Below, in pieces: positions 12,062 through 35,976 of a stretch of 64,000 bases of DNA; position 1 is the first letter of the stretch, and each line of letters starts with the position of its first letter. The stretch is taken from NCBI GenBank assembly GCA_965603825.1, contig CBFDEM010000017.1:1-64000 (forward strand), read 5' to 3'. Made by a program: the position numbers and the translations under genes. The notes under the pieces were generated by a model that worked only from the letters and a program-made list of their open reading frames with translations, did no database searches and was not told the DNA's origin. The stretch is from Blepharisma stoltei ATCC 30299. Lineage: Eukaryota > Protista > Ciliophora.

Positions 12062-13195
12062 TTAATCTTTTGGGGTTAAAGATGGAGGTTTATTATTTTT
12101 GATCCATGGATGATTCAATGCATCTGCGGCTGTAATCCTTTTCTTATAATCGTATTCAAGCATTTTACTAAGCAAATCTTTGAGTTCATCTGAGGTAAAA
12201 GCTCAGTCATTCCCTTCAAAGACAATTTCTTTCTTATATTCGTTTTTTAGGTCCGCCACATTTTTCCCTTTATACGGAAGTTTTCCTTGGACAATAGTGT
12301 ATAAAATAACTCCTAAACTCCAAATATCACTGGCAAACAGACTATAATTTTTATTTAGGATTTCAGGACCCATATAGCATGTCTAAATAAAGCTTACTGC
12401 CTTATTAGCTTCCACTTTTTTTTTTATTTCTCAAGGATAAGTAAAGCCTAAGAGTTTAATAATGTTTCCTTCTTTGGTATTTATATTAATTTTCCCAAAA
12501 TTGATTCCCAAGTGAGGAATATCATTACCGTGGCAATGATTTAAACCGCTTAAAATGTCTCGCATTATTGTACTCGCTAGGGAGTATCCGATGCTTTCAT
12601 GATGTATTTTATCAGCAAGGCTAAGTCCAGGGAGATATTCATAAACCAAAAAAAAGTTGTCTCCTAATTCATAAATATCATAAAGTTTGACAATATTTGG
12701 GTGGTCCTAAATTAATTTTACAAGTCTTTGAAAGTTTTGAATTTCCTTAATAAAATTATCATATACTCCTTCAAATATATCTGACTTTTTAACTTCTTTA
12801 ATGATCTTTTTTACTCCAGTTCTTTTATCGTTGACTAAGGAAAAACTATCATTAAAATCAAGAAATTTTTTTTTGATAGTTGAGAAATGCTGTCTTAAAG
12901 GAGTTTTTGAAAATTTCTTAATGTACTGCTTAGTTGAGTCCTTAAAAGTATTTTGTGGGCTTGGATTTACTGCTTGAGCTTTTTCCTTTGTAAAGTTCTT
13001 AGGTTTTCTATCAACTGTTGATAAACCTCTTGAATATCTGCGTGGTGGAAGCTTTGTCGTAGTTTGGCTTCTCTTACTTATAGGAGTTGATTTTAATTCT
13101 GCTTTATCTTCGATTTCTGACCTTAAGAGTTCAGTAGTTGTAGATTCTAGATTTTTTTTGCTCGTTTCTGTCTCTTTTGAAGAACAACAGCCCAT
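12062..13195 (-). CDS. CDPK-like pseudokinase copy A, EF-hand-less, 367 aa; introns 12707-12721 and 12383-12397
   Basis: MGCC start; DHPNIVKLYD, HLGINFGK (for HRDLKPEN), GFT (for DFG), YMGPE, SDIWSLG, ALNHPW, then TPKD-TAA. Confidence 0.82.
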
Positions 13196-13643
13196 TTATT
13201 AATTTCAGAATTATCAAATAAAATTTAAATATTTTTTTTAAGGTTTTAAGCACTTTGAGTAGATAGGTATTATATTCTAATTAAAAAAAAATTTAATAAT
13301 TATTATCATTGTGCAATTTTTCACCAAATTTTTAACGTAACATTTTTAATATATTTGAATAATCAGGAATTTCTATTAATAATTTGATTTTTATCAAAAT
13401 CAAATTTTATTCCAACGCTCTATAATATCTATGTGATTTATGTTTTTAAGATTAAGGATCTCTTACAATCTTAATATTCCTGAAATATTTTGTAATAAAC
13501 CATCTATTAATATCATAATTAAAATGCATTATGATAAAAAATCAAAAACAATTAAATAAAATAATATTTTATATCTTTTATTTAATATCCAAATCTAGAT
13601 AAAAAGTAATTAAAATTTTAAGTTGGAGTTAAACTATGCATCA

Positions 13644-14791
13644 TTATACTGCATTATTGATGTTTGGGGTTAAAGATGAAAATTCATTATTTCTGATCCA
13701 TGGATGATTCAATGCATCTGCGGCTGTAATTCTTTTCTTATAATCGTATTCAAGCATTTTACTAAGCAAATCTTTCAGTTCATCTGAGGTAAAGTCTCAG
13801 TCACTTCCTTCAAAGGCAATTTCTTTTTTATATTCATTCTTTAGGTCCGCCACATTTTTCCCTTTAAATGGAAGTTTTCCTTGGACAAGAATGTATAAAA
13901 TAACTCCTAAACTTCAAATATCACTAGCAAACTGATTATAATTTCCTTTTAAGATTTCAGGAGCCATATAGCACGTCTAAATAAAGCTTACCACCTCATT
14001 AGCTTTCACTTTTTGTTTTATTTCTCAAGGATAAGTAAAGCCTTAATAATGTTTCCTTCTTTGGTGTTTATAAAATTTATATTAATTTTCCTAAAATCTA
14101 TCCCCAAGTGAGGAATATCATTATCGTGGCAATAATTTAAGCCGCTTAAAATGCCTCGCATTATTGTACTCGCTAGAGAGTATCCAATGCTTTCGCTATT
14201 TACTTTATCAGCTAGACTGGGTCCATATAGGAATTCATAAACCAAAAAAAAACTGTCTCCTAATTCATAGACATCATAAACTTTAACAACATTTGGGTGG
14301 TCCTAAATTAATTTTACAAGGCTTTGAAATTTTTGAATTTCCTCAATAAATTTATCATATACTCCTTCAAATATGGCTGACTTTTTAATTTCTTTGATGA
14401 TCTTTTTCACACCAGTTCTTTTATCATTAACTAAGGAAATACTATCGTTAGAATCGAGAAACCGTTTTTTGATAGTTGAGAAATGCTCTCTTAAAGGAGT
14501 TTTTAAGAATTTTTTAAAATACTCTTTACTTGAGTCCCTAAAAGTATTTTGTGGGCTTGGATTTGCTGATTGAGCTTTTTGCATTTTAAGGCCCTTAGGC
14601 TTTCTATCAGTTGATGATAAACCTTTTGAGCGTCTGCGTGGTGGCAGTTTTGTCATAGTTAGGCTTCTCTTATTTATAGGAGCTGATTTTAATTCTATTT
14701 TATCTTCGATTTCTGGCCTTAAGAATTCCATCGTTGGAGATTTTAGCTCTTTTTCATTTGTTTCTCTCTCCTTTGAAGAGCAACAACCCAT
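13644..14791 (-). pseudogene. CDPK-like pseudokinase copy B, EF-less, frameshifted; introns 14303-14317 and 13977-13991
   Basis: Paralog of A/C. A 7-nt deletion at ~14043 (ATTAAGGC vs ATTAAACTCTTAGGC) gives ...KALLILEK-TAA; the downstream exon is intact in the old frame. Confidence 0.78.
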
Positions 14792-15373
14792 TTATTATTT
14801 TAAACGATATCAGAGAAAATCTGAATATTTTGTCTAATTTCCAGCAGATAAATATTATAACTTAATTATAACAAATTTTATAAATCACTATCAGTTATGC
14901 AATTATTTGATCAAATTTTCAACTTCGTAACTTTTCTAATATGGTTTGAATAATCAAGAATTTCTAAAAAGTTTTTCCCTAAAGCTCTATAGTTTTACAA
15001 ATGGGTTTCTTTAATAAAATGTTTAAATGGTAATTCGCATTTTTAACAAGAAAAACTCTTCAAAAGAGATTTTCCCAGACATGCCAGCATATAAAAGGTA
15101 ATAAAATCTAAGACAAATGCCTACTTTCGCTTAATCACAATCTTAAATATTTTTTCTAATTTTTTTAAGTAATTTCGTGAATATTTCAATCAATAAATTC
15201 TTAATATCCTATCTCCCTTTATAAAAGAAATTAGTGATGTTTAAAACCTATCAATTGTAATTTGGGTTTTTTCGCATCAAAAATTTGCTTTCACTTAATA
15301 TCCAAATTTCTTGACCAGAAGGGGAATTAAAATTTTAAAGAGAAGTTAAATAACGCAACATTAAGTCGCTTTA

Positions 15374-16507
15374 TTATTGTTTTAGGGTTAAAAGCGAAGA
15401 AACATTATTTTTGATCCATGGATGATTCAATGCTTCTGCAGCTGTAATTCTTTTCTTATAATCGTATTCAAGCATTTTACTAAGCAAATCTTTGAGTTCA
15501 TCTGAGGTAAAGACCCAGTCACTCCCTTCAAAGTCAATTTCTTTTTTATATTCGTTTTTTAAATCCTCTGGATTTTTCCCTTTAAATGGATGCTTTCCTT
15601 GAACAATAGTGTATAAAATAACTCCTAAACTTCAGATATCACTAGCAAACTGATTATAGTTTCCATTTAGGATTTCAGGAGCCATATAGCGCGTCTAAAT
15701 AAAGCTTACCACCTCATTAGCTTTCACTTTTTGTTTTATTTCTCAAGGATAAGAAAAGCCTAAGAGCTTAATAATGTTTCCTTCTTTGGTATTTATATTA
15801 ATTTTCCCAAAATTGATTCCTAAGTGAGGAATTCCATTTTCGTGGCAATGATTTAAACCACTTAAAATTTCTCGCATTATTGTACTCGCTAGGGAGTATC
15901 CAATGCTTTCATGATGTATTTTATCAGCAAGGCTAAGTCCAGACAAATATTCATAAACCAAAAAAAAGCTGTCTCCTAGTTCATAGACATCATAAAGTTT
16001 AACGATATTTGGGTGGTCCTAAATTAATTTTACAAGGCTTTGAAATTTTTGAATCTCTTTAATAAAATCATCATACACTTCCTGAAAAATGGCTGATTTT
16101 TTGACTTCTTTAATAATTTTTTTTATCCCAGTTCTTTTATCGATTACTAAGGAAATGCTATCAGTATAATCAAGTAACCGTTTTTTAATAGTTGAAAAAT
16201 GCTCTCTTAAAGGAGTCTTTGAAAATTTCTTAAAAAAACGTGTACTTGGGCTTCTAGAAGTATTTTGTGGGCTTGGGTTTGCTGATTGGGCTTTTTGCAA
16301 TTTAAGATTCTTTGGCTTTCTTTCAATAGACGAAAAATTTCTCGAACGCCTTCGCAGTGGCAGCTTCGGCATAGTCAGACTTCTCTTATTTACAGGATTT
16401 GATTTAATTTCTGTTTCATCGTCAATTTCTGTCCTCAAAAATTCTATAGTTGTAGATTTTTGCTCTTTTTCATTAGAATCTATCTCCTTTGAAGAACAAC
16501 AACCCAT
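15374..16507 (-). CDS. CDPK-like pseudokinase copy C, EF-hand-less, 367 aa; introns 16019-16033 and 15695-15709
   Basis: MGCC; HLGINFGK, GFS, YMAPE, SDI-TGA(W)-SLG. Stops at the same codon position as copy A (TLKQ-TAA). Confidence 0.82.
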
Positions 16508-17149
16508 TTATAATTTTTTTAAAGAACTTTTAAAATCGAAAAATATCAAATGAAATGCTTTAAAGAAAAATATGATTCGAAAAAATTATGTGATTTATTT
16601 TTTATATTCGTGATTGCTTTAGAAATAATTGTATCATCCAGATTTAACTACCTTTTGGAAAGATTTTAATAAATGGAGACTTATCGGTAGGATAATTTTT
16701 TAAAACATGCTTTAGGAGAATAAATAAATAATCATAAAAAAAATTTAAGAAACTAATGATCAAACAGATTTTCAAAAATACATAGTAATATAAAAATTTA
16801 ACCGACAGTTTAAAAATGATATAAATATTTATAAATTTTAATTATATAAAGGATAGAAATTTCCTAAGAAAAATTGAGAATATGCAATGCTGAATATTTC
16901 GTTTAAGGATTAAAGAAATTTGTGCAAATCAGATATTTTATACCTAATTAAAAGAAAGCTTATAAACTATATCAATTATATATTATATAATCATATTTCG
17001 TAAAATTTGTAATGTTACTTGCCCTGCCAGTATTAAATGCTTTATTTGTATTAATAAAATTAATTTTTATCAAAACCAATTTTTTCTAAATTATTTTTAA
17101 TTTCTTTTATTAAATTTTTAAATGAGTTTTTTTATAGGCTTTATTTACA

Positions 17150-17516
17150 GTGAGAAAAATTATTTTTGCTCTTCAAAAGAATTGTACGATAGTTCAGCAT
17201 CTACAACTTCTTTTATGACTTTTCAGTCCAATTTTATTTTCTAGAAATTTCAATCCTCCATAAATTTTCGAATTTCTCTTATTGAGTTTCTCTAAAAAAC
17301 TTGGGAAGAAGAGGCTTTAAATTCTTCAAAAAAGCTTTTGTGGGAGCTTTTATTTGAGGCACTTGTTGATGCCAATTTTTGTGTTTTATGACAGAAAGAA
17401 ATTAGTGGGGTAAAACTCAATTTCTGAAATCACTCTATTTTAACTTCATATTGGCATAATTAAATATGTTTCTGAGTACAGGGTATGGCTTCCCAGCCAT
17501 GTAGCCTCAGCACATA
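17150..17516 (-). pseudogene. Collapsed relic of a pseudo-CDPK copy (N-terminal region fused to the last EF-hand)
   Basis: Decayed matches to ISEIE, STSAS..., SIRE and KIGLK-VIKEV, followed directly by VDAE..TI-SFEE (EF4 of full copies); multiple stops and indels. Confidence 0.6.
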
Positions 17517-17816
17517 TACATTCTTAATTATAATTTTCAATTATAGCTATGAATTTCAGGCAAGTTATTATAAATTATTATTTACACTGTCTCTAAAGTT
17601 GAGTACTAGTTTATCCAAATCATTCTTAGCTTATACTAAAAATATAACCTTAGTAGACTTGCCAAATTAGTATAAAAATTATATTTATACGAATGTTTAT
17701 TTTTGTATATAACGTCTCAATTTTTTATTGCTATTTAGGCATAATCCAAATTCTAATTATTTTCTAGTATACAAAAATATTGACAAAAATCTAATTTTTA
17801 ACAGTTACATAAAAAT

Positions 17817-18365
17817 ATGGGATCAGCATGCTCAGGCAAACTAAAATTAAAAGAAAGGCGATTTCTTATACTTGGCCTAGACGGAGCCGGCAAAAAGACT
17901 CTTCTAGGAAAATTAGGATGTGGAGAACCGCAGCATCACGCACTGTTTGAGGGTTTTGACTGATGGAATGTTCAAAATGGACGTTGCAATTTTGTCTCTT
18001 GAAATCTAGGAACTGATGCAACAAAACCAGAAAACAAGCCAAAATATAAAGACATGTTTAGAAATACAGTCGGCATCATTTTTGTAATTGATTCATCTAA
18101 TAGAGATCGATTTGAAGAAGTAAAAACTGAATTTTGGAAAATTATTAATGATAAGTGTTTGAGGGATTTCGCTTTATTGGTGTTTGCAAATAAACAAGAT
18201 GTTCAGGGTGCAGCATCTGAAGATGATATCAAAAGCTTTATATATCTTTGAAATGTTAGAAGAAATAAATGGAATATTCAAGCATCATCATTTAAGAACG
18301 GAGATGGGCTTGAAGCTGGCCTTACGTGGCTAGATAATGAAACAGGTAAGAATGTAAGGAAATAG
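17817..18365 (+). CDS. Divergent ARF/ARL-like GTPase (probable pseudo-GTPase), 182 aa
   Basis: MG start; LILGLDGAGKKT, GIIFVIDSSNRDRF, LLVFANKQD, WNIQASS, GDGLEAGLTWL. Three in-frame TGA read as Trp; ends in TAG. Confidence 0.85.
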
Positions 18366-18480
18366 TTATACTCATAATTCTTATTCTTATTAAAATTCTT
18401 AGGCTATTTGTGGTATTTCAAAATAAAAATGCCCTAATACTGAGTAAAAAATGTTTTATTTTTATATTTACACTTAAAAA

Positions 18481-19078
18481 ATGCAAAGTAAATCCTATGG
18501 TGCATCAATCTCTGAATTTTGGCTGAATTTTTTTGGTCGCAAACTAATCAATATATTGACAGTAGGAAGTGATTATGCTTGAAAAGCCACAATCCGTTAC
18601 AGACTAGACCTTGAAGCTCTCTTACAGTAAAAATTCTAATAATCGATTCAATATTAAGCCATATTACCTTTATTGTTTTGATCTTTTTCCTGAAAAATTT
18701 AGATCAGGAGAAAGACATTATTATGAAAATGTTCAAGGGATAATAATTGTTGCAAATTACAGCGATGACACAAAAGACTGTTATGCAAGGTAAGGACTTG
18801 TGTTATGAAAATCAACTTATAGGTGCTCCTATATTAATATTAGCTAATAAGCAAGATTTACCTGATGCTATGAGTGTTGATCAAATCAGAGAAAGATTAG
18901 GGCTTAATTTGATAAGAAGAATAAATTAGATTATTCAACGTACTAGTTAACTGATAAACTGGGGCTGAATGATATAAGAGGAAAGAAATGGCATATTCAG
19001 GGAGCATGTGCTATTAGTGGAGATGGGCTATATGAAGGACTGGATTGGCTTTCCAGAGCACTGAATGGGGAAGCATAA
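18481..19078 (+). pseudogene. ARF pseudogene fused to the C-terminal fragment of a second, canonical ARF
   Basis: GASISEFW..FFGRK..ILTVG, HYYENVQGII and ILILANKQDLPDAMS in shifting frames with stops; then [38 protein letters not shown]. Confidence 0.8.
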
Positions 19079-19704
19079 ATAAAATTAAATAAAATGCTTT
19101 AAAGTATCTAATTAAAAATAAGCTCCTTATGCTAAAGCAGCCTGGCTTTTAAAGATAATAATTGTAAAATTAAAAATCGGTACCGAATTTCATATGCATG
19201 ATAATTTACCATTATATTAATACGTATTTTCAAAGCAAAGAAGATAAAACTTACTTTTCATAAATTTTATAAAACAAAATGAAGGCGCTTACAAAACTCT
19301 TAGAAAAGAGCAAATTTATTGACAACGCAGTCGGAAACGGAAATAAAATTCTTTCAAAATATTAAAGACTATGAGAAATACAATTTTGACTCAAAGAAAA
19401 CTAATTTTATAAATGACAAGCATTGATCAAGCAAGAACTTCTCAGAAATACAAGAAGACGAAACCGATATTAGCTTTAGTTGGAACTCTGAAATTATCCC
19501 TGCATTAGAGCAATTATCAGTTAAAATTTTAACAGAAATAAAACATAACAATATTCTTCTTGACTTTCAAAATGATGTTTAGAAACAATGAAAATAACAA
19601 AGAATTGCTTAAACCTCATTCAAAGAAGCTAAAAACTTGTAAAAATAATTCAGATAAAAAAATGTAATTTGAATAAAAATATCAAATTACCTAAATTAGT
19701 TTAA

Positions 19705-21367
19705 CTATACAGGCTTTTTAGTTATTTTTTCACCAAATAAAAATATCTTGAGCTCTTCGAAAGAAATTGTTCCTGACTGATCAGCATCAACCACTCCAAA
19801 GAACTGAGCCCATTCTTTAGTTCTTATTCCTTTTATGCTTGCCTTTAGCTCTTTAAGACTCAGCTGTCCATCTCCACTTTTATCACAAAGCCTAAACGCT
19901 TTTTCGAATTTTTTTATATTTTCATCAGTGTTCCAGTCTGTGCAAGCTGTCACAAATTCTGAAAATTCAATATAACCTTTTTTCATAAGGTCGGCGTTTG
20001 AAATAATCTTCCTAAGCTTTTTTTGGACTTTGATATCTAGATTTTTAGTTTCGTTCAATAGCTCTTCTTCAGTAAGCTGCCCATCTTTATTGGTGTCCAA
20101 ACTTTTAAAAATTTCAATAAACTGGCGACTGTCATTTTGGTCTGCAAGGTTGACTTTGAAAAACGAAAAAAGCGCTCTTGCGATTTTATCTTTAGAGCTA
20201 AACTCTACAAGGCGATTGATTGCTCCATTGTTAGCAGGAGTTGATAACAGAGATTGATTATTTTTGACCCATAGATGCTCCAGCGCATTTTGTACATCAA
20301 TTCTTTTATTGTAATCAATCTCAAACATTTTGCTAAGAATATCTTTAAATTCATTAGTTGTGAAAATCCAATTATTTTCTTCAAAATTAATCCCTTTTTG
20401 ATACTGAAGTTTAAGATCTGCTAAAGTTTTTCCTCTAAAAGGAGGCTTTCTTTGAATAATTGAATACAACAAGACTCCAACACTTCAGACATCGCTTGCG
20501 AGTTCATTGCAGTTGCCATCTAGTACTTCAGGAGCAATATAGCAGGTCTAAATAAACTTTACCACTTCATTTAGCTTAATTGAGTCTTCTATTTCCCAAG
20601 GAAAAGAAAAACTTACAAGTTTGCAATTAGTTTTCCCATCTTTTGAGTCCACAATAACATGTGAAAGATTTATCCCATGATGGACAATCCTATTTCTATG
20701 GCAATAATTTAAGCCGCTTAAAATATCTCGAATTATTGTGCATGCCAAAGAAGAGCTAATAATTTCATCATCAAGCTTCTCAAGTAAATTCATTCCAGAG
20801 GCGTGCTCATAAACTAAATATCAGCTTTTTCCTGACTCGTAGACTTCACAAAGTTTGACTATATTTGGGTGATCCTAAATTTAATTTTACAAGGGAAAGG
20901 AATTTTTGTACCTCAAGAATAAACATTTCTTGGATTTCTAATGGCACACACAATTTTCTAACCTCTTTAATTACTCGTTTTAAGCCTGTTATTTTGTCTA
21001 CTACGAGAGAAGTCTCTCCTGAGAACCCAAAATGCAATTTTCTGACCGTTGTGTATTTTTCTCTTATTGGAGTTTTTAGAAACTCAAATGAAAATCCTTT
21101 ATTTTTGAATGAAGGACTTCTTGGAGAGTTAGAATATGATGCGTTTGTTGATAAAGATATCAGCTTTGAATTTCTTGGGGAGGATGATCCAGCTGAAGAA
21201 AAGCTCCCACGGCGGCTTTTGGACAACTTTAGAGAGTTTTTGTGCCGTTTTTTAGAAGTTTCTGGAGCAACAACTTTATATTCGATTTCAGATTTCAAAG
21301 ATTTTGTCGTAGATTCTTGCAGACCCTTTTCACTGGTAGGATCCGGCCTATTTGAACAGCAACCCAT
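19705..21367 (-). CDS. CDPK-like pseudokinase copy D with 4 EF-hands, 543 aa; introns 20875-20890 (16 nt) and 20548-20562
   Basis: MGCC; RVIK, HHGINLSH, SFS, YIAPE, SDV-TGA-SVG; junction helix; EF loops DTNKDGQLTEEE, DLMKKGYIEFSE, DKSGDGQLSLKE, DADQSGTISFEE. Confidence 0.88.
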
Positions 21368-22072
21368 TTCTTTATTTTTATATTGAAACAGTGTAAAACT
21401 TCTTAAAATAAACTCTGAAAACATTATTAAAGTTTTTAATGTAAATTCTGAAGAAAATAGTTCAATATGCAATATTAAAATGCATAATTTAATAATAGTA
21501 AAGTTTAAAAAAAAGAAATTTTGGGTTAAATAAGGAATAGGATTTCTATTAAGCAAAAAAGAAATTATTAATGCAACTATTTTAAAATAATTTTGATGAT
21601 AAGAATTATTTAATCGGCATTAAATTATAAAAATATAAAAATTCTGTTTTTATTGAAAATAGTTCATATAACAAGCTGAGGTATCAAAAAATTTTTATTG
21701 AATTTTTTGAGTTATTGCGAATATTATGATAATTATAAAATTTGACTTAAATCTTTGAGGATACTACCCATAATTATAAATTATTGATATTATCCTATTC
21801 TATCTCGCAACAATAGAGAAACGAATAAAGAGCTTGAAAGCAGATATCAGCTTGGTATGAGAAATATATTAAGGCATGAGTTAATTTCAATTTCAACAGT
21901 TGTCTAGTTTCTTTTATTATTTTGAAAATGTCTCCATATATTTGGGATAAGAATAAAGTCTCAAATAGATTATTAATAAAATATAAATTATACAAATTGC
22001 GCTGTTCATTTAATATATCTAATATTCACAAAATCAAAAGAAAATATGAGAGCGGCTATTTTACGTTGACAA

Positions 22073-22250
22073 GATATTGAAGTCAAAAAATTTTAAAAAA
22101 TACTAGCATTGTAATTATATCAAGTCTTCTGAATTTTCCACTGCTTGTGCAGACTGAAATAATGATGAAAATATGATAAAATTTAAGAAGGTGTTTAAGC
22201 TTTGTGATAAAAATGGAGACTGTTAAGTGTTGAGGAACTCGAAGTGAAAA
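22073..22250 (+). pseudogene. Inverted fragment of the pseudo-CDPK EF-hand region
   Basis: The + strand reads YIKSSEFSTACAD(W)NNDENMIKFKKVFKLCDKNGD, matching EF2-EF3 of the minus-strand copies. Confidence 0.78.
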
Positions 22251-22673: not shown

Positions 22674-24386
22674 CTATACACGATTTATATTAATAACATT
22701 TCCACCAAACAAAAATGCTTTGAGCTCTTCAAGAGAAATCGTTCCTGACTGATCGGAATCGACATTTCCAAAGAACTGAACCCACTCTTTAGTTCTTATT
22801 CCTTCGATTTTTTCTTTTAGTTCTTTAAGACTTAATTGTCCATCCCCATTTTTATCACAAATTTTAAATGCTTTTTCGAATTTTTTAATATTTTCCTGAG
22901 TATTCCAATCTGTGCAAGCTGTAGCAAATTCTGAAAATCCTATATATCCTTTCTTCATAAGATCAGCGTTCTTTAAGATCATTTTAAGCTTGTTTTGGAC
23001 TTCAATGTCTAAATTCTTAGTTTCATTTAAGAGCTCTTCCTTAGTGATTTGTCCATCTTTATTAGTATCCAAACTTTTGAAAAGCTCAATAAACTGACGA
23101 CTTTCATTTTGGTCTGCCAGGGTGACTTTGAAATATTTTAAAAGCTCCTGAGTAATGACGTCTTTTGAAGTAAACTCTACAAGGCGGTTGATTGCTCTAT
23201 TATTAGTAGGCGATGAAGGCAAAGAATGATAATTTTTGACCCATGGGTGGTTCAATGCTTCCTCAACCGTTATTCTTTTATTGCAGTCAAACTCAAGCAT
23301 TTTACTAAGCAAATCTTTTAACTCAGCCGATTCAAAAACCCAATTCGTTTCGTCAAAATTAAGTACTCTTTCATAGTCCTTTAATAGATCCTTCACAGTT
23401 TTACCCCGAAAAGGAGGCTTTTCTTGGATCATTAAATACAAAATAACTCCAGCGCTCCAAATATCACTAGCCGGATTATCAAAGACCTTATTGAGTATTT
23501 CAGGAGCCATAAAACATGTCTAAGTAAAACTTACCACTTCGTCTATTTCTACTAAACCTTCTAATTCTCAAGGATAGGAAAAGCGAGTTATTTTACAATT
23601 AATTTTCCCATCTCTTGAATCCAAAATAATTTTCTCAAGATTTAACCCCAAGTGTATAACTCGGTTTCTGTGGCAATAGTTTAAACCACTTAAAATATCT
23701 CGTGTTATTGAGCTTGCCAACGAATTATCAACACTTTCTTTATGAGTCAATTCAAGTAAATTACTTCCGGAAAAGAACTCATAAATTAAAGACCATTTTT
23801 CTTCTGATTCATAGACTTCATGAAGTTTCACTATATTTGGGTGATCCTAATTTATTCTTACAAGGCAATGGAACTTTTGAATTTCCATTATTAATTTTTC
23901 TTTATCTTTTTTCTGAATTGCGGACTTTTTTACCTCTTTTATGACCTTTTTAAGGCTAGTTCTGTTATCATTTGCGATTAAAGTATCTCCATGAAATGCT
24001 GAGTGCAAAATTTTTATCGGTGTATATCTTTCTTCAACAGGAATTTTTAAAAATTTTTTGGAAAAATCTATATCAAATCGAGGGCTTCGAGGGCTGCGAG
24101 CGCTTTGAGGACTTCGAGAGCTTCGTGGGCTGGGATCAGTCACTTTTATTGTGTCTACCATTAAGGATGATGACCTGTAGTTGTCCTTTGGAGACGTTGA
24201 AGTTGAAGATCAGTCTTCAGAACGTTGAACCAACAGTCGTGGAGAGTGCTTTTTTTTATGCCTTTCTCGAGGTGTTTGAGTAGCAAATGCTTTCTTGTCG
24301 AGTTCCGACTTCAAAGATTCAGCTGTCTTGTCTGCTTGACTCTTTTCACTTGTTGAGTCCAATCGTTTCGAGCAGCAACAGCCCAT
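22674..24386 (-). CDS. CDPK-like pseudokinase copy E with 4 EF-hands, 560 aa; introns 23847-23861 and 23520-23534
   Basis: MGCCC; SPR repeats; HLGLNLEK, RFS, FMAPE, SDIWSAG; four EF loops; ends in TAG. Confidence 0.88.
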
Positions 24387-25744
24387 TTCTTTATTATAAA
24401 TGGAGAAATTGTTGAAATTATGTGGAAAAAAATCAGTAAAACTTCGATAAATTAAAGTTATAGGGCTCTTAAGAAGAACAAGCCAAAAAATAAAAAATTC
24501 ATCTGAATCCTTACTAGAAAATAAGAAAATATTTTTCATAAAAATATTTCTTATATAGTTGAAATTAGTTTGGATTGTATTTTTAAATAAAGTATACATG
24601 AAAATCATTTTGAAAATTTTACTATAAGACTGGGCTAACCAAAATGGAGAAATTGTATCTATTATCGGAATTTTTATTATTCCCCATTGAAAATTAATAT
24701 TTCATTTTATTTGATAATAATTATGAATTGATATTTCAAGTTGTTTTTAAGATAGCTCTGATCTTTTATAGATACTTGAAAATAAATTTTCAATAATTCA
24801 AAAATGATGCTTTACCAACTATCTCATTAATTCTCAACTCATCTTTTAATTCGTATAAAATATGAGTGATATTGCTAGGGAAATAGCGTGAAAAGCTAGG
24901 ATTTAAATCTTTTCACCTTCTAGAGAGGTTTTAAGTGATCAATTAATAGAATTTGCGATGCAAAATGCATACGGGGAAGGGATTAAGATAAAAATTTAGC
25001 TATATTATCAATTATGTTTATCAATGCACTTGGATAATTATTATTTAAAAATTGATTCTAAACATTTCTTGGATATGCATTTTTATTCAAAATATATCCA
25101 TTTGGATTAGTTTAAGAGTGCTGTTTATGATTGCATTATAAGATTATCGGCAGCAAATTCAATCTACAACTGCAATGCTGTATTCTTAGTTAAAGCAAGG
25201 AATTATGGGAAATATTCATTATAATTATCCTTATGAAAGTTGTTGAGTAGAAGATGCTGCATAAGGATGCTTTTTATAATCGTGGCATAAATCATTTAGC
25301 CATAGTTTTCTTGATATCTCAGAGAAGTAAATAATAACTAAAATAACAGTTTTCCTATAAAAAGTAAAAAACATTTTTGCCAAAGCTATTTTTAGTTTTT
25401 AAAGAAAATAGTTTATGAAAATTAAAAATTATTTTTATTATGCAATTTCACAAGAATCTACGCATTATTAATATATCTAAACTTTTAGTCATTTAATTGC
25501 AATTTCACCACGTTCATGCGATTAAACTTAGCCATATTAAATTTTCAGTAAAATCACAAATCAAGATGGGGCATTAATTATCAATCTTCAAGTTAAATAG
25601 GTCCAGTATTTATTTGCAATTAAATAAATCTTTAATTAAATATTGTGAAATGAGATCTGGCTATAGCAATTTATTAAATATAGCCTATTAGAAATGATAT
25701 TAAAACCTTATGGGAATTATTAAGAGTGTGCTAATATGTCTATT

Positions 25745-26935
25745 CTATAGCCTTCGCAATTTATCTTTCGAAGTAAAGTCTACAGGACTGTTTATGGTTC
25801 CATTATTAGTTGAGGTAGAAATCAAAGATTGATTGTTTTTGACTCATGGATGATTCAATGCATCCTCAGCAGAAATTCTTTTGTTGCAGTCAAACTCAAG
25901 CATTTTACTAAGTAAATCTTTTAGCTCACTTGACTCTAAAATCCAATTATTATCTTCAAAATTAATCCGCCTTTTATAATCCTTGAGAAGAGTCTTCGCA
26001 TTATTTCCTTGATATGGAGGCTTTCCTTGGATTATTGTATATAAAATAACTCCAGCACTTCAAATATCACTAGAAAATTTGTTATAAACCCCGCTTAATA
26101 TTTCAGGAGCCATAAAGCATGTCTATATGAAATTTACCGCTTCGTTTATTTTAATTAGCTTTTCCAGCTCCCAAGGAAAAGTAAACCCAGTAATTTTACA
26201 ATTAGGCTTCCCATCAGTTGAAACTAAAATAATTTTTTCTAGATTCAACCCAAGATGTAAAATCCGGTTTCTGTGGCAGTAATTTAGACCACTTAAAATA
26301 TCCCGTATTATGGTTTGCGCCAATTTACTCCCAATGCTTTCATTATCAATCTTTTCTAGTAAATTGTTTCCAAGTAGAAGCTCATAAACTAAAGACCATT
26401 TTTCTCCTGATTCATAGACCTCATAAAGCTTTAATATATTTGGGTGGTCCTAATTTATTCTTACAAGGCATAAAAACTTTTGAAATTTCATATTTAATTT
26501 TTCATGCGCTTTTTGCTGAATTTCTGATTTTTTTACTTCTTTTATAACCCTTTTAAGGCTGACTCTTTTATCGTTTACTAGTAAAATATCTCCATAGAGT
26601 CCTAAATGCAATTTTTTTATTGTTGTGAAGTTTTCTCCAACTGGAGTTTTTAAAATTTTTCCTAAACAATCTTTATTAAGCTCATTGCTTGGTGGGAAGG
26701 TATAAGAACCTTTAATTGAAGCTGTTTTTGAAGATGATCTGGATGAAGTCTTTGGAGATGAAGAGGATGAAGATAATTTTTTAGTTCTTTGAATTGGTAG
26801 CTGGGACAAATGTTTTTTTACTTTTTTTTCTTGAGAATCATCTGGAGACGTTATTTCCATTCTCAATGACTTAGTTGACTTGTCTGCTTGATCCTTTTCA
26901 TTAGGGTCTGACCTTTTAGAGAAGCAGCAGCCCAT
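25745..26935 (-). CDS. CDPK-like pseudokinase copy F, truncated in the junction domain (no EF-hands), 386 aa; introns 26450-26464 and 26123-26137
   Basis: MGCC; HLGLNLEK, GFT, FMAPE. Ends ...VDFTSKDKLRRL-TAG after a 1-nt deletion; no EF sequence downstream. Confidence 0.78.
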
Positions 26936-27192: not shown

Positions 27193-27240
27193 GTAATTGC
27201 CCGAGGATGGCGCTATCTTGCGCCATCCTCGGGCAATTAC
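27193..27240. repeat. Perfect 21-bp GC-rich inverted repeat with 6-nt loop (hairpin)
   Basis: GTAATTGCCCGAGGATGGCGC-TATCTT-GCGCCATCCTCGGGCAATTAC. Confidence 0.97.
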
Positions 27241-28222
27241 TATAATTGATATTAAATTTTAGGAGATTTTATATCCCATTCGAAAACTTATCTATTTTAA
27301 TTCTCTTTCATTTATTTTTTAATACATTTTAGATAACGCTTCGAAAAATAAATGAATGCCTATAATTAAGCTTAATAATTAATTTTAACAAATCTAATTT
27401 TATGCTTTTAATTTGCATAACTGATTTTACTCAGCTAAATTAGCTTCTATAAATAAATTGTATTAAGACAAGGACCATTTTAGAATATGATAGAGTCTTA
27501 ATATTTTTCTAATACGCTCATAATTATTTAAGTCTAATTGAACTCTATTCAGATTCTTTAATGAGCTTTGGCTTTTTAATTAAATTGGCCTTGCATTCAT
27601 AAAATTTATTAGCTAAAAATATGTCATCATTTGTAAGGAATTTCAGGGAGGTACAAAATCTCACAATCCTAAGCTCTTTTAGAATTTTCATTAGATAAAG
27701 AGGAAAAAATTGCTTTATCTTTTATTTATATGTAATAATCTCCAAAACCAATATATAAGGTAAATCAGTCCATATACTGATAATAGTTCTTAATTTGACG
27801 CATATTATGCAAATAAATATCATAACGAATCTAATGCCATCCATGCTCTAATATAAATTAAAAATGATTTCAACTTCATTCAGAATTGATTAATAAAGCT
27901 GTATTTACATTTACTATACTTAATGGATATTGCTCTACTCTAAAAACCTCCTTCAGTATTTTCTTTTTTATTAAACCATATTTTCAATTCCCGACTTAGT
28001 CAACTTTTTTCTGGGATAATTCTTCAGTTATTTTTTCTTTCAATTTTTATTTATTTGCACCATCATATACTTATTCTCATAAATTCTTTATCACTTCAAT
28101 TTCATCATATTCTTTATTTTTTTAACGGTTATAACACGAAATACCCTATCAAGAATGCTGCCAAACAAGCCCATTAAAATTTAATAAGTTCTTTATGATA
28201 ATTAATATGATCTTAAGCTAAA

Positions 28223-29896
28223 TTATGCATGATTAGCATTAATAAAATCTTTTTCAAACAAAAACTGCTTAAGCTCTTCAAAAGAAATTGTTCCTGATTG
28301 ATCAAAATCCACATTTCCAAAGAATTCTGCTCATTCTTCATCTTCAATTCCTTCTATATTTGCTTTTAGCTCTTCAAGACTTAATTGGCCGTCTCCACTT
28401 TCGTCACAAAGCTTAAATGCTTTTTCCAGTTTTTTTATATTTTCATCAGTATTCCAGTCTGTACAGGCTGTCAAGAATTCTGAAAATCCAATATAGCCTT
28501 TTTTCATAAGATCAGCGTTTTTTAAAATCTGTTGAAGCTTGATTTGTATTTCAGTGTCTAAATTTTTTGTTTCATTTAAGAGCTCGTCCATAGTAATTTG
28601 TCCATCTTTATTAGAATCCAAGCTTTTAAAAATTTCAATAAACTGACGACTTTCGTTTTGTCCTGTAAGGTTAACCTTGAAAAATGAAAAAATTGCCCTT
28701 GCAATTTTGTCTTTAGAAGTAAATTCTATAAGATTACTGATTGCTTTATTGTTAGCAGGAGATGAAAGCAAATAATTGCTATTTTTTATTCATGGATGAC
28801 TTAGAGCGTCCTCAACTGAAATTCTTTTGTTGTAGTCAAATTCAAGCATCCTGCTAAGCAAATCCTTCAATTCAATTGGGTCAAGCATCCATTCTGAACC
28901 TTCAAAAGTAAGCCCTCTTTTATACTCACTTAGAAGATCCTTTGATTTTTTCCCTCGAAATGGAGGCTTTTCTTTGATAATTAAATATAAAATAACTCCA
29001 ACGCTCCAAATATCACTAGCAGGACTATCATAAATCCCATTGAGTATCTCAGGAGCCATAAAGCATGTCTATATAAAATTTACCACTTGATTATATTTTA
29101 CTAGACCTTTTATTTCCCAAGGATAAGAAAAACCAATTAATTTGCAATTGACCTTCCCATAGCTTGAATCCAAAATAATTTTTTCAAGATTTAGCCCTAA
29201 ATGCAAAATTTTATTCTTGTGGCAATAGCTTAAACCGCTTAAAATATCTCGCATTATTGAACCTGTTAGCAAATGACCAATAATTTCTCTGCGGGTGAAT
29301 TCAAGTAAATTGCTTCCTGAGAAGAACTCATAAACAAGGGAAAACTTTTCTTCTGAATCATAGACTTCGTGAAGTTTAACTATGTTTGGGTGATCCTAAT
29401 TTATTCTTACAAAGCATTGGAAATTTTGTGCTTCCATTGTTAACGTTTTCTGCTCTCTTATCTCGATTGCTGACTTTTTTACCTCTTTTATAACCTTTTT
29501 GAGTCCTGTTCTTTTATCAGTTGATAGTAAAGTATCTCCATGAAATGCTGAATGCAATGTTTTTATTATTTTAAAATTTTCATGAATAGATGCTTTTAAA
29601 ATTTTCTTAGGAGGATCTATATTAAATTGGCTATTTGGTGAATCAGGATGAGGAACCTTTGTTGAAACTGATTTTAAGGTTAATGACCTCGTTAGCGCAC
29701 CTGAAGAAAGTTTTAAATTGAAACTTTCAGAGCGCTTCTTTGATGTCCGAGTTTTGTGTTTTTTGTCTTGTTTTACTCGAGGAGTTTTTGGAGCAAGCTC
29801 AACCTCGTCTATTTCTGACCTCAATGAGTCAGTTGACTTTTTGGGTTGACCCTTCTCACTAATAGGATCAGACCTTTTAGACTCGCAGCAACCCAT
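28223..29896 (-). CDS. CDPK-like pseudokinase copy G with 4 EF-hands, 547 aa; introns 29396-29410 and 29069-29083
   Basis: MGCC; HLGLNLEK, GFS, FMAPE, SDIWSVG, SHP-TGA(W); EF-hands; ends ...NHA-TAA. Confidence 0.87.
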
Positions 29897-31698
29897 TTTT
29901 ATAATTAATTATTGAAATTGTGGAAATTATTAAATGTTAAAAGCGGAAAAAATTCAGCAAGTTATATTGCTTTTGAAGAGGATTTACTTGAAATATAAAT
30001 TTTATATTATAAAAAATTAATTTTTAAATGATAATCTTTCTTCTAATTGAAATTGGTTTGGTCTAAAATTTCTAAATATAATTTTAATTTTTTGAAATTT
30101 CTGCTGTAATAATAAGTTTATAGAAAATAACAGCCAAGTCGATTGATAGAAATTTTTAATTATACTCCTATCGAGATAATTATAATTATTTCTTTAAGCA
30201 ATAACTAATCAATATGACATATTAACTGATTATTTTGATAGCCGTTTCTCTTCACTTATGCTGCTGACAAAAATGCATATAAATAAATCTTAAAGATCTT
30301 GCTAATTGCAGCCTTATCTAACTAATAATTAATATAAAATCATTATGCTCTTATGATATATATCCCAATTGAGTTTGGGGTGATAGTAAGATTATGCAAG
30401 TGCATCATCCTAAGTATTTTCCCTAATATTTCTTAAATTAAAATTCGGCTATATTTTTTCACACTTTTAAAATGTTCAGCCTGCTACGGCACTTTATCTT
30501 TCAATTTAGTTGAACATTAGCAAAAATCATTAAGTCAAAAAATCTGCCATCGACTTTTAAGGAATTTTACTACTTTTTTTAGAGAGACTGTAAATTTCTT
30601 CAAAATCCTCATAGATGAATAAAGTGATGATAGGCCCAAGCTTTTTTATATTTGCTATTTATAAGAAACATATCAAAATTATGAAGCTGCTGCTAGCCTA
30701 GAGGATTTTTTAAGAATGATATTTCTTAGCATAGCTAATAATAAAAATTCAATATATAAAGATTTAATTAAAAAATCAATTTTTTTAGCATTGCCACTGT
30801 AGGGGAGAAAGCTTCTAAATTATATTTTCAGCTTCTCAATATCCAGCTGTCAATTTTAGAAGCTTAAGAAGAGTTCCAAATAAATATGGATGTAATTTAA
30901 GCGCTTTTAATTAGCTTTTCCATATTGAACCATCATATTTCAGAGATAATTTTTTGACCTGCACCCAAATTTTTTGCTTTTTACATATGGAAGCAGTAAG
31001 CTCAATTTTATGAGTTTCATAATTGGATCAGATTTGCCAGGAATTATATCGATTCCCCTCGAAAAATTATTACTACTCCTCACGAGACAGGAAAAGACGC
31101 TTCTAAATATATATCAGAGCTCTCAAATGTTCAGTTGCTGAGGTTAGTAGCTCAATAAGTGTTTAAACAATCGCAGAGTTAACATCATCACTTGAATAAG
31201 TCTTTTAAGCACATATCACAAGAATAATTATGATTTTACCCCAAAATAAAGCTACACAAAGAAATAACAAAACAATAACCTTCAAGAAATTAGACTCCAT
31301 GGGTCAGGCATTCCAGAGCAACTTGCCGAAGATTATGACCGCATTATAGTTGAAAAATTTTAGAAAATAGGAAATAGTTAAAAATCATTATCTATATTGT
31401 GATTGAATTAAGCCATGATTGTCTTTTGCGGATTCAGATCTAGACTCAAAGAAAAATCTCAGAACCGAGTTGGAAACTATCTTTACGAGGCTAGATTTAG
31501 GCTTGATGGGTATACACATTTCTTAACTAAAAACTCGATGAATAGTTTTTATATATAATTAGCAATTTAATTAGATGGATGCTTATTTAGCATACTTGAC
31601 AAACTATGGAGTATGCATCATTAGCGATATTTTATTAGCTATTTTAAAATAATCATAATCAATATTAAAAATATAGCCAAAATTGTTAATTAAAATAA

Positions 31699-33203
31699 TT
31701 AGACTGTTTTACTATATTTTGGACTAATACGATTTTTCCCAAACAAAAATTCCTTGAGCTCTTCAAAAGAGATTGTTCCTGACCGATCAAAATCAACACT
31801 CCCAAAGAACTCAGCCCATTCTTTAGATTTTATCCCTTTAATACTTGCTTTTAGCTCTTTAAGACTTAACTGTCCATCTCCGCTTTTATCGCACAGCTTA
31901 AACGCTTTTTCGAATCTTTTTATATTTTCATCAGTATTTCAGTCAGTGCAAGCTGTTAAAAATTCTGAAAATTCTATATAGCCTTTCTCCATAAGGTCGG
32001 CACTATTTAAAATTTTCTTAAGTCTATTTTGTACTTTGATATCTAGGTTTTTAATTTCGTCTAATAGCTCTTCCTTACTGATTTGCCCATCTTTATTTTT
32101 ATCTAAATTTTTAAAAAGATCAATAAATTTGCGATGGTCATTTTGGTTTGTAAGGTTGACTTTGAAAAATGAAAAAAGTTCTCTTGCAATTTTATCTTTA
32201 GAAGTAAATTCTACAAGGCGAGTGATTGCTTCATTATTAGTAGAGGGTGAAACCAAAGACTGGCTATTTTTTTGAATTCATGGATGATTCAACGCGTCTT
32301 CAACAGTAATTCTTGTATTATAGTCATAATTCAGCATTTTAGTAAGCAAATCTCTCAACTCATTAGAGTCTAAAATGTCATTTTCTTGATTAAAACTTAA
32401 TCCTTTGCCATATTTTTCCAAAAGATCTTCTGAGTTTGTTCCTTGAAATGGAGGCTTTCCTTGGGTCATTATATATAAAATAACTCCTAGGCTCCAAATA
32501 TCGCTAGCTGGATTATTATAAACTCCACTTAATATTTCAGGAGCCATAAAATATCTTGCATTATTGAGCATGCCAACGAATTCCCTATAATTTCATTAGC
32601 CTTATCAAGCAAGCTGCTTCCGGAGAAGAACTCATAAACCAAAAGCCAGCTTTCTCTTGTATCATACACTTCAAGCAACTTAACTACGTTTGGATGATCC
32701 TAAATTATATTTACCAGGCATTGAAATTTTTGGATTTCCATTATAAATTTTTCATGTATATTTTCTGGTATTACCGATTTTTTGAACTCTTTAATAACTT
32801 TTTTTATCTCAGTCCTTTTATCGTTTGCTAGCGAAATTTCTCCATAAAATCCTTTGTGCAGCTTTCTGACTGTCGTGTAATTAATTCTAATTGATTCTTT
32901 TAAAAAATTTTGCGAAAAGTTTTTGAAGGATAGGCTTTTAGGAGAATTTGCACGGGATGTCTTGGTAGAGACTGCTTTTAAAGTTGACAATCTTGACCTT
33001 CCTCTTGGCGATGAAGGTTGCGAGGATCAATTACTTGTATGCCTTGCTGAGAGCTGAGGCATACGTTTTGTTTTTTTTCTTCTTATAGGCGCTTCGGGGA
33101 TGCTAGTATTGCTATCGATTTCTGACCTCAGAGATTTAGTAGACATGCTTGAAAGACCCTTTTCTATTGTAGGATCTGGCCTTGTTGAACAGCAGCAACC
33201 CAT
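31699..33203 (-). pseudogene. Pseudo-CDPK copy H with an internal out-of-frame deletion of the catalytic/activation segment; intron 32700-32714
   Basis: The 5' part reads ...SIMQDIL-WLLKY-TAA (32529). The 3' part (MAPE to 4 EF-hands) is fully open in another frame. Confidence 0.8.
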
Positions 33204-34474
33204 AAACTTATTATTATTGGGATTCAAGAAAAAAATGTCTGTTGAGAATAAAACATTATAATAATCTGCCACGCCATTCAAGAATAAAGATTAAAAGGCA
33301 AATTTTAAATATTTTCGATAAAATTAATAAAAGACTTTTGGGTTGTTTTTTTAGTCAATTTTTTTTATCTAAAATTCTAAAAGAATCCTCGAGGAATAAG
33401 TAGACTGTAAAGTAAAAGGCCAATGGATATATCAAAAAAAATTAATGAAAAAGCTGATGGTAATCCAGGTTTTTAATTTATAGCAAAATCATTAAAATTA
33501 ATTTACAAAAGGAAAATAACCTCATATAACTAGTAACGATTTTAGAAAAATACAGCATAAAATTTAATAATAAAAATTCAATATATAAAGATTTAATTAA
33601 AAAATCAATTTTTTTAGTATGACCTTTATAGGGGAGAGAGCTTCTAAATTATATTCTCAGGCTTCTCAATATTCAGCTGTAAATTTTAGTAGCTTAAACG
33701 TGAAGGCAATTGAAGCGCTTTTAATTAGCTTTTCCATATTGAATGATCATATTTCAGTGATAATTTTTTGACCTGCACCCAAATTTTTTGCTTTTTACAT
33801 ATGGAAGTAGTAAGCTCAATTTTATGAGTTTCATAATTGGATCAGATTTGCTAGGAATTATATCGATTCCCCTCGAAAAATTATTACTATTCCTCACGAA
33901 ACAGGAAAAGACGCTTCTAAATATCTACCCCAGCTTTCCAATGTTCAGTTGCTAAGGCCAGTAGATCAATAAGTGTTTAAACAATCGCAGAGTTAACATC
34001 ATCACTTGAATAAGTCTTTTAAGCACATATCACAAGAATAATTATGATTTTACCCCAAAATAAAGCTACACAAAGAAATAACAAAACAATAACCTTCAAG
34101 AAATTAGACTCCATGGGTCAGGCATTCCAGAGCAACTTGCCGAAGATTATGACCGCATTATAGTTGAAAAATTTTAGAAAATAGGAAATAGTTAAAAAAT
34201 CATTATCTATATTGTGATTGAATTAAGCCATGATTGTCTTTTGCGGATTCAGATCTAGACTCAAAGAAAAATCTCAGCTTGATGGGCATATACATTTCTT
34301 AACTAAAAACTCGATGAATAGTTTTTATATATAATTAGCAATTTAATTAGATGGATGCTTATTTAGCATACTTGACAAACTATGGAGTATGCATCATTAG
34401 CGATATTTTATTAGCTATTTTAAAATAATCATAATCAATATTAAAAATATAGCCAAAATTGTTAATTAAAATAA

Positions 34475-35976
34475 TTAGACTGTTTTACTATATTTTGGAC
34501 TAATACGATTTTTCCCAAACAAAAATTCCTTGAGCTCTTCAAAAGAGATTGTTCCTGACCGATCAAAATCAACACTCCCAAAGAACTCAGCCCATTCTTT
34601 AGATTTTATCCCTTTAATACTTGCTTTTAGCTCTTTAAGACTTAACTGTCCATCTCCGCTTTTATCGCACAGCTTAAACGCTTTTTCGAATCTTTTTATA
34701 TTTTCATCAGTATTTCAGTCAGTGCAAGCTGTTAAAAATTCTGAAAATTCTATATAGCCTTTCTCCATAAGGTCGGCACTATTTAAAATTTTCTTAAGTC
34801 TATTTTGTACTTTGATATCTAGGTTTTTAATTTCGTCTAAGAGCTCTTTCTTACTGATTTGCCCATCTTTATTTTTATCTAAATTTTTAAAAAGATCAAT
34901 AAATTTGCGATGGTCATTTTGGTTTGTAAGGTTGACTTTGAAAAATGAAAAAAGTTCTCTTGCAATTTTATCTTTAGAAGTAAATTCTACAAGGCGAGTG
35001 ATTGCTTCATTATTAGTAGAGGGTGAAACCAAAGACTGGCTATTTTTTTGAATTCATGGATGATTCAACGCGTCTTCAACAGTAATTCTTGTATTATAGT
35101 CATAATTCAGCATTTTAGTAAGCAAATCTCTCAACTCACTAAAGTCTAAAATGCCATTTTCTTGATTAAAACTTAATCCTTTGCCATATTTTTCCAAAAG
35201 ATCTTCTGAGTTTTTTCCTTGAAATGGAGGCTTTCCTTGGGTCATTATATATAAAATAGCTCCTAGGCTCCAAATATCGCTAGCTGGATTATTATAAATT
35301 CCACTTAATATTTCAGGAGCCATAAAATATCTTGCATTATTGAGCATGCCAACGAATTCCCTATAATTTCATTAGCCTTATCAAGCAAGCTGCTTCCGGA
35401 GAAGAACTCATAAACCAAAAGCCAGCATTCTCTTGTATCATAGACTTCGAGCAGCTTAACTATGTTTGGATGATCCTAAATTATATTTACCAGGCATCGA
35501 AATTTTTGGATTTCCATTATAAATTTTTCATGTATATTTTCTGGTACTATCAATTTTTTGAACTCTTTAATAACTTTTTTTATCTCAGTCCTTTTATTGT
35601 TTGCTAGCAATGTTTCTCCGTAAAATCCTTTATGTAGTTTTTTGACAGTCGTGTATTTAATTTTAATCGATTCTTTATAAAAATTTTGCGAAAAGTTTTT
35701 GAAGGATAGGCTTTTAGGAGAATTTGCGCGGGATGTCTTAGAGATTGCTTTTAAAGCTGACAATCTTGGCCTTCCTCCTGGCGATGAAGGTTGTGAGGAT
35801 ATATTGCTTGTGTGCCTTGCTGAGAGCTTATGCATGCGCTTTGTTTTTTTTCTTCTTATAGGCACTTCGGGGATACTGGTATTGCTATCGATTTCCGACC
35901 TCAGAGATTTAGTAGACATGCTTGAAAGACCCTTTTCTATTGTAGGATCTGGCCTTGTTGAACAGCAGCAACCCAT
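34475..35976 (-). pseudogene. Pseudo-CDPK copy I, duplicate of H with the same deletion; intron 35476-35490
   Basis: Same junction (35323-35327), premature TAA at 35305, open C-lobe plus EF-hand frame. Confidence 0.8.

Follow-up and report, generated by a model that had tools for sequence, protein, structure and literature searches.

The first 64,000 nucleotides (nt) of contig CBFDEM010000017.1 (C17:1-64000, hereafter the window) of the macronuclear genome of Blepharisma stoltei ATCC 30299 contain a tandem array, at positions 12062-35976, of nine genes derived from calcium-dependent protein kinases (CDPKs) in which the catalytic motifs have been replaced or deleted. The best overall explanation, to which we assign a probability of about 0.6, is that the array represents a Blepharisma-lineage family of CDPK-derived pseudokinases, predicted to be acylated at the N terminus, with a role as Ca2+-gated binders. 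The descriptive part of this explanation, i.e. a selected and expressed pseudokinase family, is very probable; the specific Ca2+-gated mechanism is offered tentatively. The array consists of nine head-to-tail repeat units with nine minus-strand MGCC starts (35976, 33203, 29896, 26935, 24386, 21367, 16507, 14791, and 13195), as an earlier reading of this DNA (the initial annotation) had described. The window starts with ~2.25 kb of CCCTAACA telomere repeats, and the array is subtelomeric, ~10-34 kb from the telomere.

The copies, named here by their MGCC start with the prefix g for intact genes, were mapped by tblastn with the longest gene model as the query and genetic code 4. The initial annotation had considered all frames open; this holds for six genes (g29896, g26935, g24386, g21367, g16507, and g13195), and three copies (35976, 33203, and 14791) are frameshifted. 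Its expectations that TGA encodes Trp and that introns are conserved were borne out: in-frame TGA codons fall at conserved Trp positions, and two introns of 15/16 nt (GTA..TAG) occupy conserved positions. The same telomere unit, UGA as Trp, and 15/16-bp introns are reported in the Blepharisma genome paper (PMC9942806). The features of the array are as follows.

34475-35976, minus strand: copy 35976, N-terminal linker and N-lobe followed by a 181-bp deletion (junction 35331-35320); intron 1 at 35490-35476; stop in the original frame at 35307-35305; C-lobe and four-EF-hand tail still open in another frame.
31699-33203, minus strand: copy 33203, a near-duplicate of copy 35976 (94% at the amino acid level); deletion junction 32555-32544; intron 1 at 32714-32700.
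28223-29896, minus strand: g29896, intact, 547 amino acids; MGCC, linker, dead kinase (HLGLNLEK, GFS), junction, and four EF hands; introns at 29410-29396 and 29083-29069.
25745-26935, minus strand: g26935, intact, 386 amino acids, kinase-only (HLGLNLEK, GFT), ending inside the junction after FTSKDK; introns at 26464-26450 and 26137-26123.
22674-24386, minus strand: g24386, intact, 560 amino acids from MGCC; dead kinase (HLGLNLEK, RFS) and EF-hand tail; introns at 23861-23847 and 23534-23520.
22065-22220, plus strand: orphan inverted fragment matching the EF2-EF3 part of the tail (g29896 residues 444-492; 52% identity over 52 amino acids), a relic of rearrangement within the array.
19705-21367, minus strand: g21367, intact, 543 amino acids; dead kinase (HHGINLSH, SFS) and EF-hand tail; intron 1 of 16 nt at 20890-20875 and intron 2 at 20562-20548.
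15374-16507, minus strand: g16507, intact, 367 amino acids, kinase-only (HLGINFGK, GFS); introns at 16033-16019 and 15709-15695.
13644-14791, minus strand: copy 14791, kinase-only; 7-nt deletion near 14043 and stop at 14020 (252 amino acids), with the rest open in another frame; introns at 14317-14303 and 13991-13977.
12062-13195, minus strand: g13195, intact, 367 amino acids, kinase-only (HLGINFGK, GFT, GPE); introns at 12721-12707 and 12397-12383.

Alignment of the copies to a canonical B. stoltei CDPK (L028) revealed that the catalytic-loop motif HRDLKPEN is replaced in all seven copies that keep this segment, by HLGLNLEK (g29896, g26935, and g24386), HHGINLSH (g21367), HLGINFGK (g16507 and g13195), or HLGIDFRK (14791), and that DFG is replaced by GFS (g29896 and g16507), GFT (g26935 and g13195), RFS (g24386), SFS (g21367), or xFT (14791). 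Every one of these copies has substitutions at four catalytic residues, namely the Asp of HRD, the Lys and Asn of the catalytic loop, and the Asp of DFG, and a family-specific (Y/F)PWE invariably comes after the former DFG. The Gly-rich loop has degenerated, with no Gly at all in the trio 16507/14791/13195. This pattern, together with the retention of the β3 Lys, αC Glu, (A/G)PE, DxWSxG, and HPW, agrees with the initial annotation; the retained motifs show single exceptions, namely VIR in a tenth copy on contig C59 (in which DFG has become GLN), αC Glu to Lys in g26935, GPE in g13195, and HLW in g21367. The activation segment, previously called short, is so only slightly, at 24 residues compared with 27 in the canonical reference. 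A pseudokinase is defined here by sequence, as a kinase fold from which one or more of three residues (VAIK Lys, HRD Asp, and DFG Asp) are missing. The copies classify as such, since they keep the Lys but neither Asp; as judged from the replaced catalytic residues, they derive from CDPKs without being CDPK enzymes.

In fold and architecture, the proteins correspond to CDPKs. Pfam searches found Pkinase and EF-hand domains, with an E value of 2e-41 for Pkinase in P0001 (CAG9316830.1), the B. stoltei database protein to which the spliced g29896 model is identical; exon 1 of g29896 alone, as opposed to the whole protein, gave no Pfam match at E 0.01. The best sequence matches in the PDB were full-length apicomplexan CDPKs (E ~1e-70 over residues 101-537, including the junction), and the phmmer alignment to CpCDPK3 spans the junction helix and all four EF hands. 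An AlphaFold2 model based on a 23-sequence alignment had a mean predicted local distance difference test score of 74.9 (~90 in the kinase core and 70-85 in the tail). The best Foldseek matches to this model were Ca2+-bound full-length CDPKs, with a target-normalized TM-score (TMt) of 0.79-0.82, and autoinhibited CDPK forms matched it only per domain. The calmodulin-like, Ca2+-binding tail that the initial annotation had ascribed to the family was found in five of the nine copies (35976, 33203, 29896, 24386, and 21367) and is intact in only three (g29896, g24386, and g21367), while the other four (26935, 16507, 14791, and 13195) stop just past HPW and are kinase-only; the C59 copy likewise has no tail. 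Where the tail is present, EF1, EF3, and EF4 have canonical residues at the Ca2+-ligand positions and EF2 (DLMKKG...) is without two ligands.

At the N terminus, eight of the nine window copies and the C59 copy begin with MGCC-x-S (Gly2, Cys3, Cys4, and Ser6); g21367 is one residue shorter and begins MGCCSN, with Ser at position 5 and Asn at position 6. The N-myristoyltransferase motif consists of a Met-Gly start and a small residue at position 6, with adjacent Cys residues for palmitoylation, and MGCCxS fits, at the motif level, putative N-myristoylation and palmitoylation. The first 96 residues are predicted to be disordered, and the first 100 contain 12-24 Ser with a net charge of +6 to +14, which makes the linker Ser-rich and basic (the initial annotation had called it basic and SP-rich).

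We determined dN/dS (the ratio of nonsynonymous to synonymous substitution rates) by the Nei-Gojobori method, with genetic code 4, on a codon alignment of the copies, all with dead motifs and the broken ones read with X at the break. The ratio was 0.15-0.33 in the kinase domain and 0.12-0.18 in the tail. Pairs within the unsaturated trio gave 0.15-0.23 at dS 0.33-0.47 (0.19 at dS 0.37 for g16507/g13195), and g29896/g24386 gave 0.23 at dS 0.79. Thus, the coding sequence of the array is under purifying selection. With regard to expression, four runs of one study contain the array stretch as contigs. In each of them, g29896 is represented by a 1.4-1.65-kb contig (28213-29889) from which both predicted 15-nt introns are exactly absent, and, within the stretch compared (28200-33250), the intergenic DNA at 29890-30900 is uncovered in all four runs. 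This indicates that the runs are RNA and verifies the g29896 gene model. Contigs also span 31674-32802 in copy 33203, and one run shows its intron 1 spliced out, so that two of the nine copies have transcript evidence. The view that this is not a dead array, which the initial annotation made dependent on dN/dS and transcripts, is thus upheld, and the selected, noncatalytic role it proposed is supported by the dN/dS values among dead-motif copies and by orthologs from a second source (dN/dS of 0.16), which are described next.

The whole assembly (41.46 Mb, 64 contigs) was searched with exon 2, which recovered the nine window copies and one further copy at C59:27350-27658, the next match having an identity of at most 39%. 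This tenth copy (P0004, 382 amino acids) is kinase-only and lies ~27 kb from a contig end. An exon 2 profile searched against 1.84 billion representative proteins confined the family to proteins of B. stoltei plus a single MMETSP transcript (P0002); P0153, which corresponds to a JGI transcript contig (L031, 1674 nt) with in-frame TGA for Trp, emerged from a further search. Spliced models were searched via identical database proteins or exon by exon; those without a database identifier (g26935, g16507, g13195, and the three broken copies) were searched exon by exon or used in local comparisons. High-ranking profile matches composed of several stretches were rejected as family members, being ordinary multi-kinase predictions with summed scores. 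Both P0002 and P0153/L031 keep the dead motifs (HLG..., with GFS and SFT), and their genetic code and tree position indicate that they come from a relative of Blepharisma. P0153 also retains the segment that is deleted in copies 33203 and 35976. In quick trees with Shimodaira-Hasegawa-like approximate likelihood ratio test (SH-aLRT) support, P0002 groups with g21367 and P0153 groups with 33203/35976; since the two join separate window paralogs, these paralogs predate the split from that source.

The family as a whole forms a single clade (SH-aLRT 100) whose stem is long, at 0.81-0.86 substitutions per site. Its nearest relatives are B. stoltei CDPK-like proteins in which only the catalytic Asp is lost (HRN, HKN, or HGN), and the next outgroup comprises the canonical, MGCC-starting CDPKs L027 and L028. 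This nesting implies that catalytic death was stepwise and is older than the array; the replacement of the catalytic residues predates the duplications. The tail-less members do not form one clade and differ in their end points, which suggests, with deep nodes weakly supported, that the tail was lost more than once.

The relationship to known systems can be summarized as follows. Compared with canonical alveolate CDPKs (TgCDPK1, 3ku2/3hx4; CpCDPK3, 3lij; B. stoltei L027/L028), the array proteins are alike in the MGC(C) motif, the CAMK-type kinase fold, and, in the tail-bearing copies, the autoinhibitory junction helix and the four-EF-hand activation domain, with an E value of ~1e-70 and a TMt of ~0.8 over the whole protein. 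They differ in that HRD has become HLG, the catalytic Lys has become Asn, the catalytic Asn has become Lys/His, and the DFG Asp has become Gly/Ser/Arg; further, the Gly-rich loop and EF2 are degenerate, the activation segment, shorter by 3 residues, includes YPWE, half of the family members are tail-less, and identity is only ~30-37%. The B. stoltei CDPK-like proteins of the HRN type (P0154, P0048/L009, L016, L019, P0079/L025, and P0133) are the sister group and nearest outgroups (SH-aLRT 98 and 95 in two trees). They have the MGCC start and the position of intron 1 in common with the array, their Gly-rich loop has degenerated, and EF hands are kept by most of them (L019 is without a tail in its present model). 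However, they keep His-Arg and often DFG, with only the catalytic Asp changed, whereas the array has lost everything. We note that a second tandem cluster, with three kinase exon 2 matches within 4 kb (478846, 480926, and 482567), lies at C47:477-483 kb and includes the HRN-type gene L025, and that P0079 (HRN-type), P0133 (HGN, SFG), and P0154 (HRN-type) map to one 1.11-Mb contig and have close accession numbers.

The initial annotation knew of no description of such a family in heterotrichs, and as far as the kind is concerned this does not stand: in the kinome of Stentor coeruleus, of the same class (Heterotrichea), 42 of 308 CDPKs are predicted pseudokinases without the VAIK Lys, HRD Asp, or DFG Asp, catalogued by sequence alone with a regulatory role suggested (Reiff and Marshall preprint, 10.1101/168187), and the Tetrahymena and Paramecium kinomes are cited there as containing ~22% pseudokinases. 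The Stentor proteins are of the same kind but are not orthologous, as the searches of representative proteins recovered the array clade only from B. stoltei and from the one MMETSP and one JGI transcript; what is new here is the tandem array in a subtelomere, the existence of versions with and without the tail, and the evidence for selection. The main text of the Blepharisma genome paper (PMC9942806) does not contain the array clade, and the word "kinase" occurs in it 0 times. Thus, the kind is already known in heterotrichs, and the clade, its arrangement, and its selection signature are undescribed in that main text.

Two of the three broken copies, 35976 and 33203, share the 181-bp deletion, which lies between TTTA direct repeats (containing TA) and takes the last part of exon 2, all of intron 2, and the opening codons of exon 3, i.e. 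the catalytic loop and DFG region, shifting the frame such that a stop follows after 218/219 amino acids. The two copies are mosaic, with dS of 0.157 upstream of the break and 0.006 downstream of it, where 7 nonsynonymous changes compare with 1 synonymous change, and their 3′ flanks (31501-31800 and 34277-34576) are 99% identical. Recent gene conversion best explains the mosaic, although partial re-duplication may also account for it. Comparison of L031 with copy 33203 gave a dN/dS of 0.16 on either side of the break, and amino acid changes were not in excess on the window lineage, which implies that the deletion is recent. RNA contigs in three runs read past the junction at 32554 into sequence encoding the missing segment (...DLVKFNEVT); these contigs fit copy 33203 over 124-167 nt, with 5-7 mismatches. 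An assembled paralog as the source of this undeleted transcript was rejected because the continuing sequence had 0 matches in the window or the whole assembly with up to 3 mismatches allowed. The RNA-seq time course of the genome paper was made from mixed strains, ATCC 30299 and HT-IV (PMC9942806), and the most economical reading is that the undeleted transcript is the HT-IV allele, i.e. a strain polymorphism; alternatively, the deletion may represent somatic excision similar to that of internal eliminated sequences.

How might such proteins work? With Gly2 myristoylated and Cys3/4 palmitoylated, they would be located at cortical or ciliary membranes and work independently of phosphotransfer. 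In the three intact tail-bearing genes, the junction helix and three canonical EF hands probably keep the CDPK switch, by which Ca2+ would pull the activation domain off the kinase face and so gate access to the well-conserved C-lobe peptide-binding surface of the dead kinase. The proteins would then serve as Ca2+-switched binders, trapping substrates or acting as scaffolds, of which the tail-less genes would be constitutively open, Ca2+-blind versions; whether scaffold or decoy, the mechanism is one that we infer. Conserved kinase folds without canonical catalysis, as in STRADα, HER3, ROP5, titin kinase, and CASK, offer the analogy behind this proposal, although these families are unrelated and none is coupled to a CDPK-type EF-hand switch. 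A more specific and rather doubtful version holds that the Ca2+-switched and Ca2+-blind forms make up a dominant-negative pair sequestering CDPK substrates: the groove would be exposed only at high Ca2+, shaping cortical or ciliary Ca2+ responses, and the tail-less paralogs would be constitutive competitors. Such a pair, if real, would represent a new way of decoding Ca2+.

Several observations weigh against a family of Ca2+-gated, membrane-bound, noncatalytic binders. The retained β3 Lys and αC Glu could reflect nucleotide binding or residual atypical activity, and the three of nine copies that are broken, together with gene conversion, suggest that individual copies are dispensable. The MGC(C) start is common to most B. 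stoltei CDPKs, such that anchoring is not specific to this family; RNA support is limited to two of the nine copies; and the dN/dS ratios of the older pairs, with saturated dS (>1), are only indicative. Further, acylation, localization, and Ca2+ binding are predicted features, and nucleotide binding and partners are hypothetical.

Another explanation is that the dead kinases, instead of binding substrates, pair with active CDPKs at the membrane and act as their allosteric regulators, activating or inhibiting, comparable with STRAD-LKB1, HER3-EGFR, and ROP5-ROP18. Reviews and the ROP5 paper reportedly provide the precedent of pseudokinases regulating paralogous kinases, the kinase fold is strongly conserved despite catalytic death, the many active MGC-start CDPKs of B. 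stoltei could share a membrane site, and the Stentor authors suggest a regulatory role (10.1101/168187). However, such a model does not need the autoinhibitory junction and EF hands to be kept, and CDPKs are, as a matter of general knowledge, not known as obligate dimers; we regard it as unlikely. Far less likely again is that the proteins are atypical but active kinases using noncanonical catalysis, in the manner of WNK, CASK, or ILK1, a plant kinase "back from the dead." Although the β3 Lys and αC Glu are kept in most copies, the APE motif and C-lobe are intact, and some predicted pseudokinases have proved active (10.1101/168187), all four catalytic residues (Asp of HRD, Lys and Asn of the catalytic loop, and Asp of DFG) are absent at once, the 16507/14791/13195 trio has not a single Gly in the Gly-rich loop, and the motif alignment contains no conserved acidic substitute in the catalytic loop. 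The active exceptions known to us are without only one of these catalytic residues.

An array in decay, made up of functionless relics of a CDPK expansion that are transcribed through their compact genomic context, would account for the frameshifts in three of nine copies, the orphan tail fragment at 22065-22220, the loss of the tail in several lineages, the excess of nonsynonymous changes (7 compared with 1) in the post-deletion halves of 35976/33203, and the subtelomeric location. Against this stand a dN/dS well under 1 in every intact pair with dead motifs inherited by all, the open frames and same motifs kept by the second-source orthologs at a dN/dS of 0.16, the correct splicing, and the conservation of invariant family-specific motifs such as YPWE after the former DFG. 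We consider decay a very improbable explanation of the array, and, on present data, it is already unlikely for the six intact genes. A selected, noncatalytic role is the supported reading of the family.

Ciliate kinomes contain 15-22% pseudokinases, yet none derived from a CDPK has a known function, and the literature searched yielded no functional study of one. As a compact natural series, the array lends itself to the question of what role a Ca2+ switch has on a dead kinase; it comprises tail-bearing, tail-less, and freshly broken copies, with dead motifs fixed before the duplications, purifying selection, verified splicing, and a candidate strain polymorphism. In other respects, it is an ordinary case of lineage-specific kinase-family turnover in a subtelomere. 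The analysis also corrects public annotation. The automatic UniRef name is "Calcium-dependent protein kinase," although the residues present would make a canonical kinase impossible, and copy 14791 is annotated in its truncated 252-amino acid form (P0007). For g24386 and g21367, our intron models, set by paralog alignment, agree with the public models P0151 and P0152, but these two models begin upstream of the conserved MGCC: P0151 (634 amino acids) begins 74 codons upstream, at 24608, and P0152 (562 amino acids) begins 19 codons upstream. The extensions (24387-24608 and 21368-21424) are AT-rich and unconserved and would bury the conserved MGCC; these upstream starts are probably mis-called.

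With respect to the genomic setting, variant units are scattered among the CCCTAACA repeats of the telomere tract (1-2250). The first 36 kb behind this tract contain only the array and lineage-specific open reading frames (ORFs), and recognizable housekeeping genes (Brix, kinesin, CCDC113/96, and DEAD-box helicase) occur from ~39.9 kb on. A DHHC palmitoyltransferase gene (Pfam DHHC, E 2e-23; 36491-37448, minus strand) lies directly upstream of the first array copy, and this adjacency of a palmitoylating enzyme to nine MGCC (dual-Cys) genes may be a coincidence or a functional neighborhood. Inside the array, an Arf-family small GTPase gene (MGSAC start; Pfam Arf, E 2e-18) is located at 17802-18362 on the plus strand, i.e. 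opposite to the array genes, in the 3.2-kb gap between g21367 and g16507. Finally, a transcribed unit of ~500 nt lies between array genes at 31046-31544, with RNA contigs in all four runs and a 92% duplicate near 33695-33994; no convincing ORF was found at 31046-31544 in code 4 or code 11, and the unit may be a noncoding gene or one for a very small protein.

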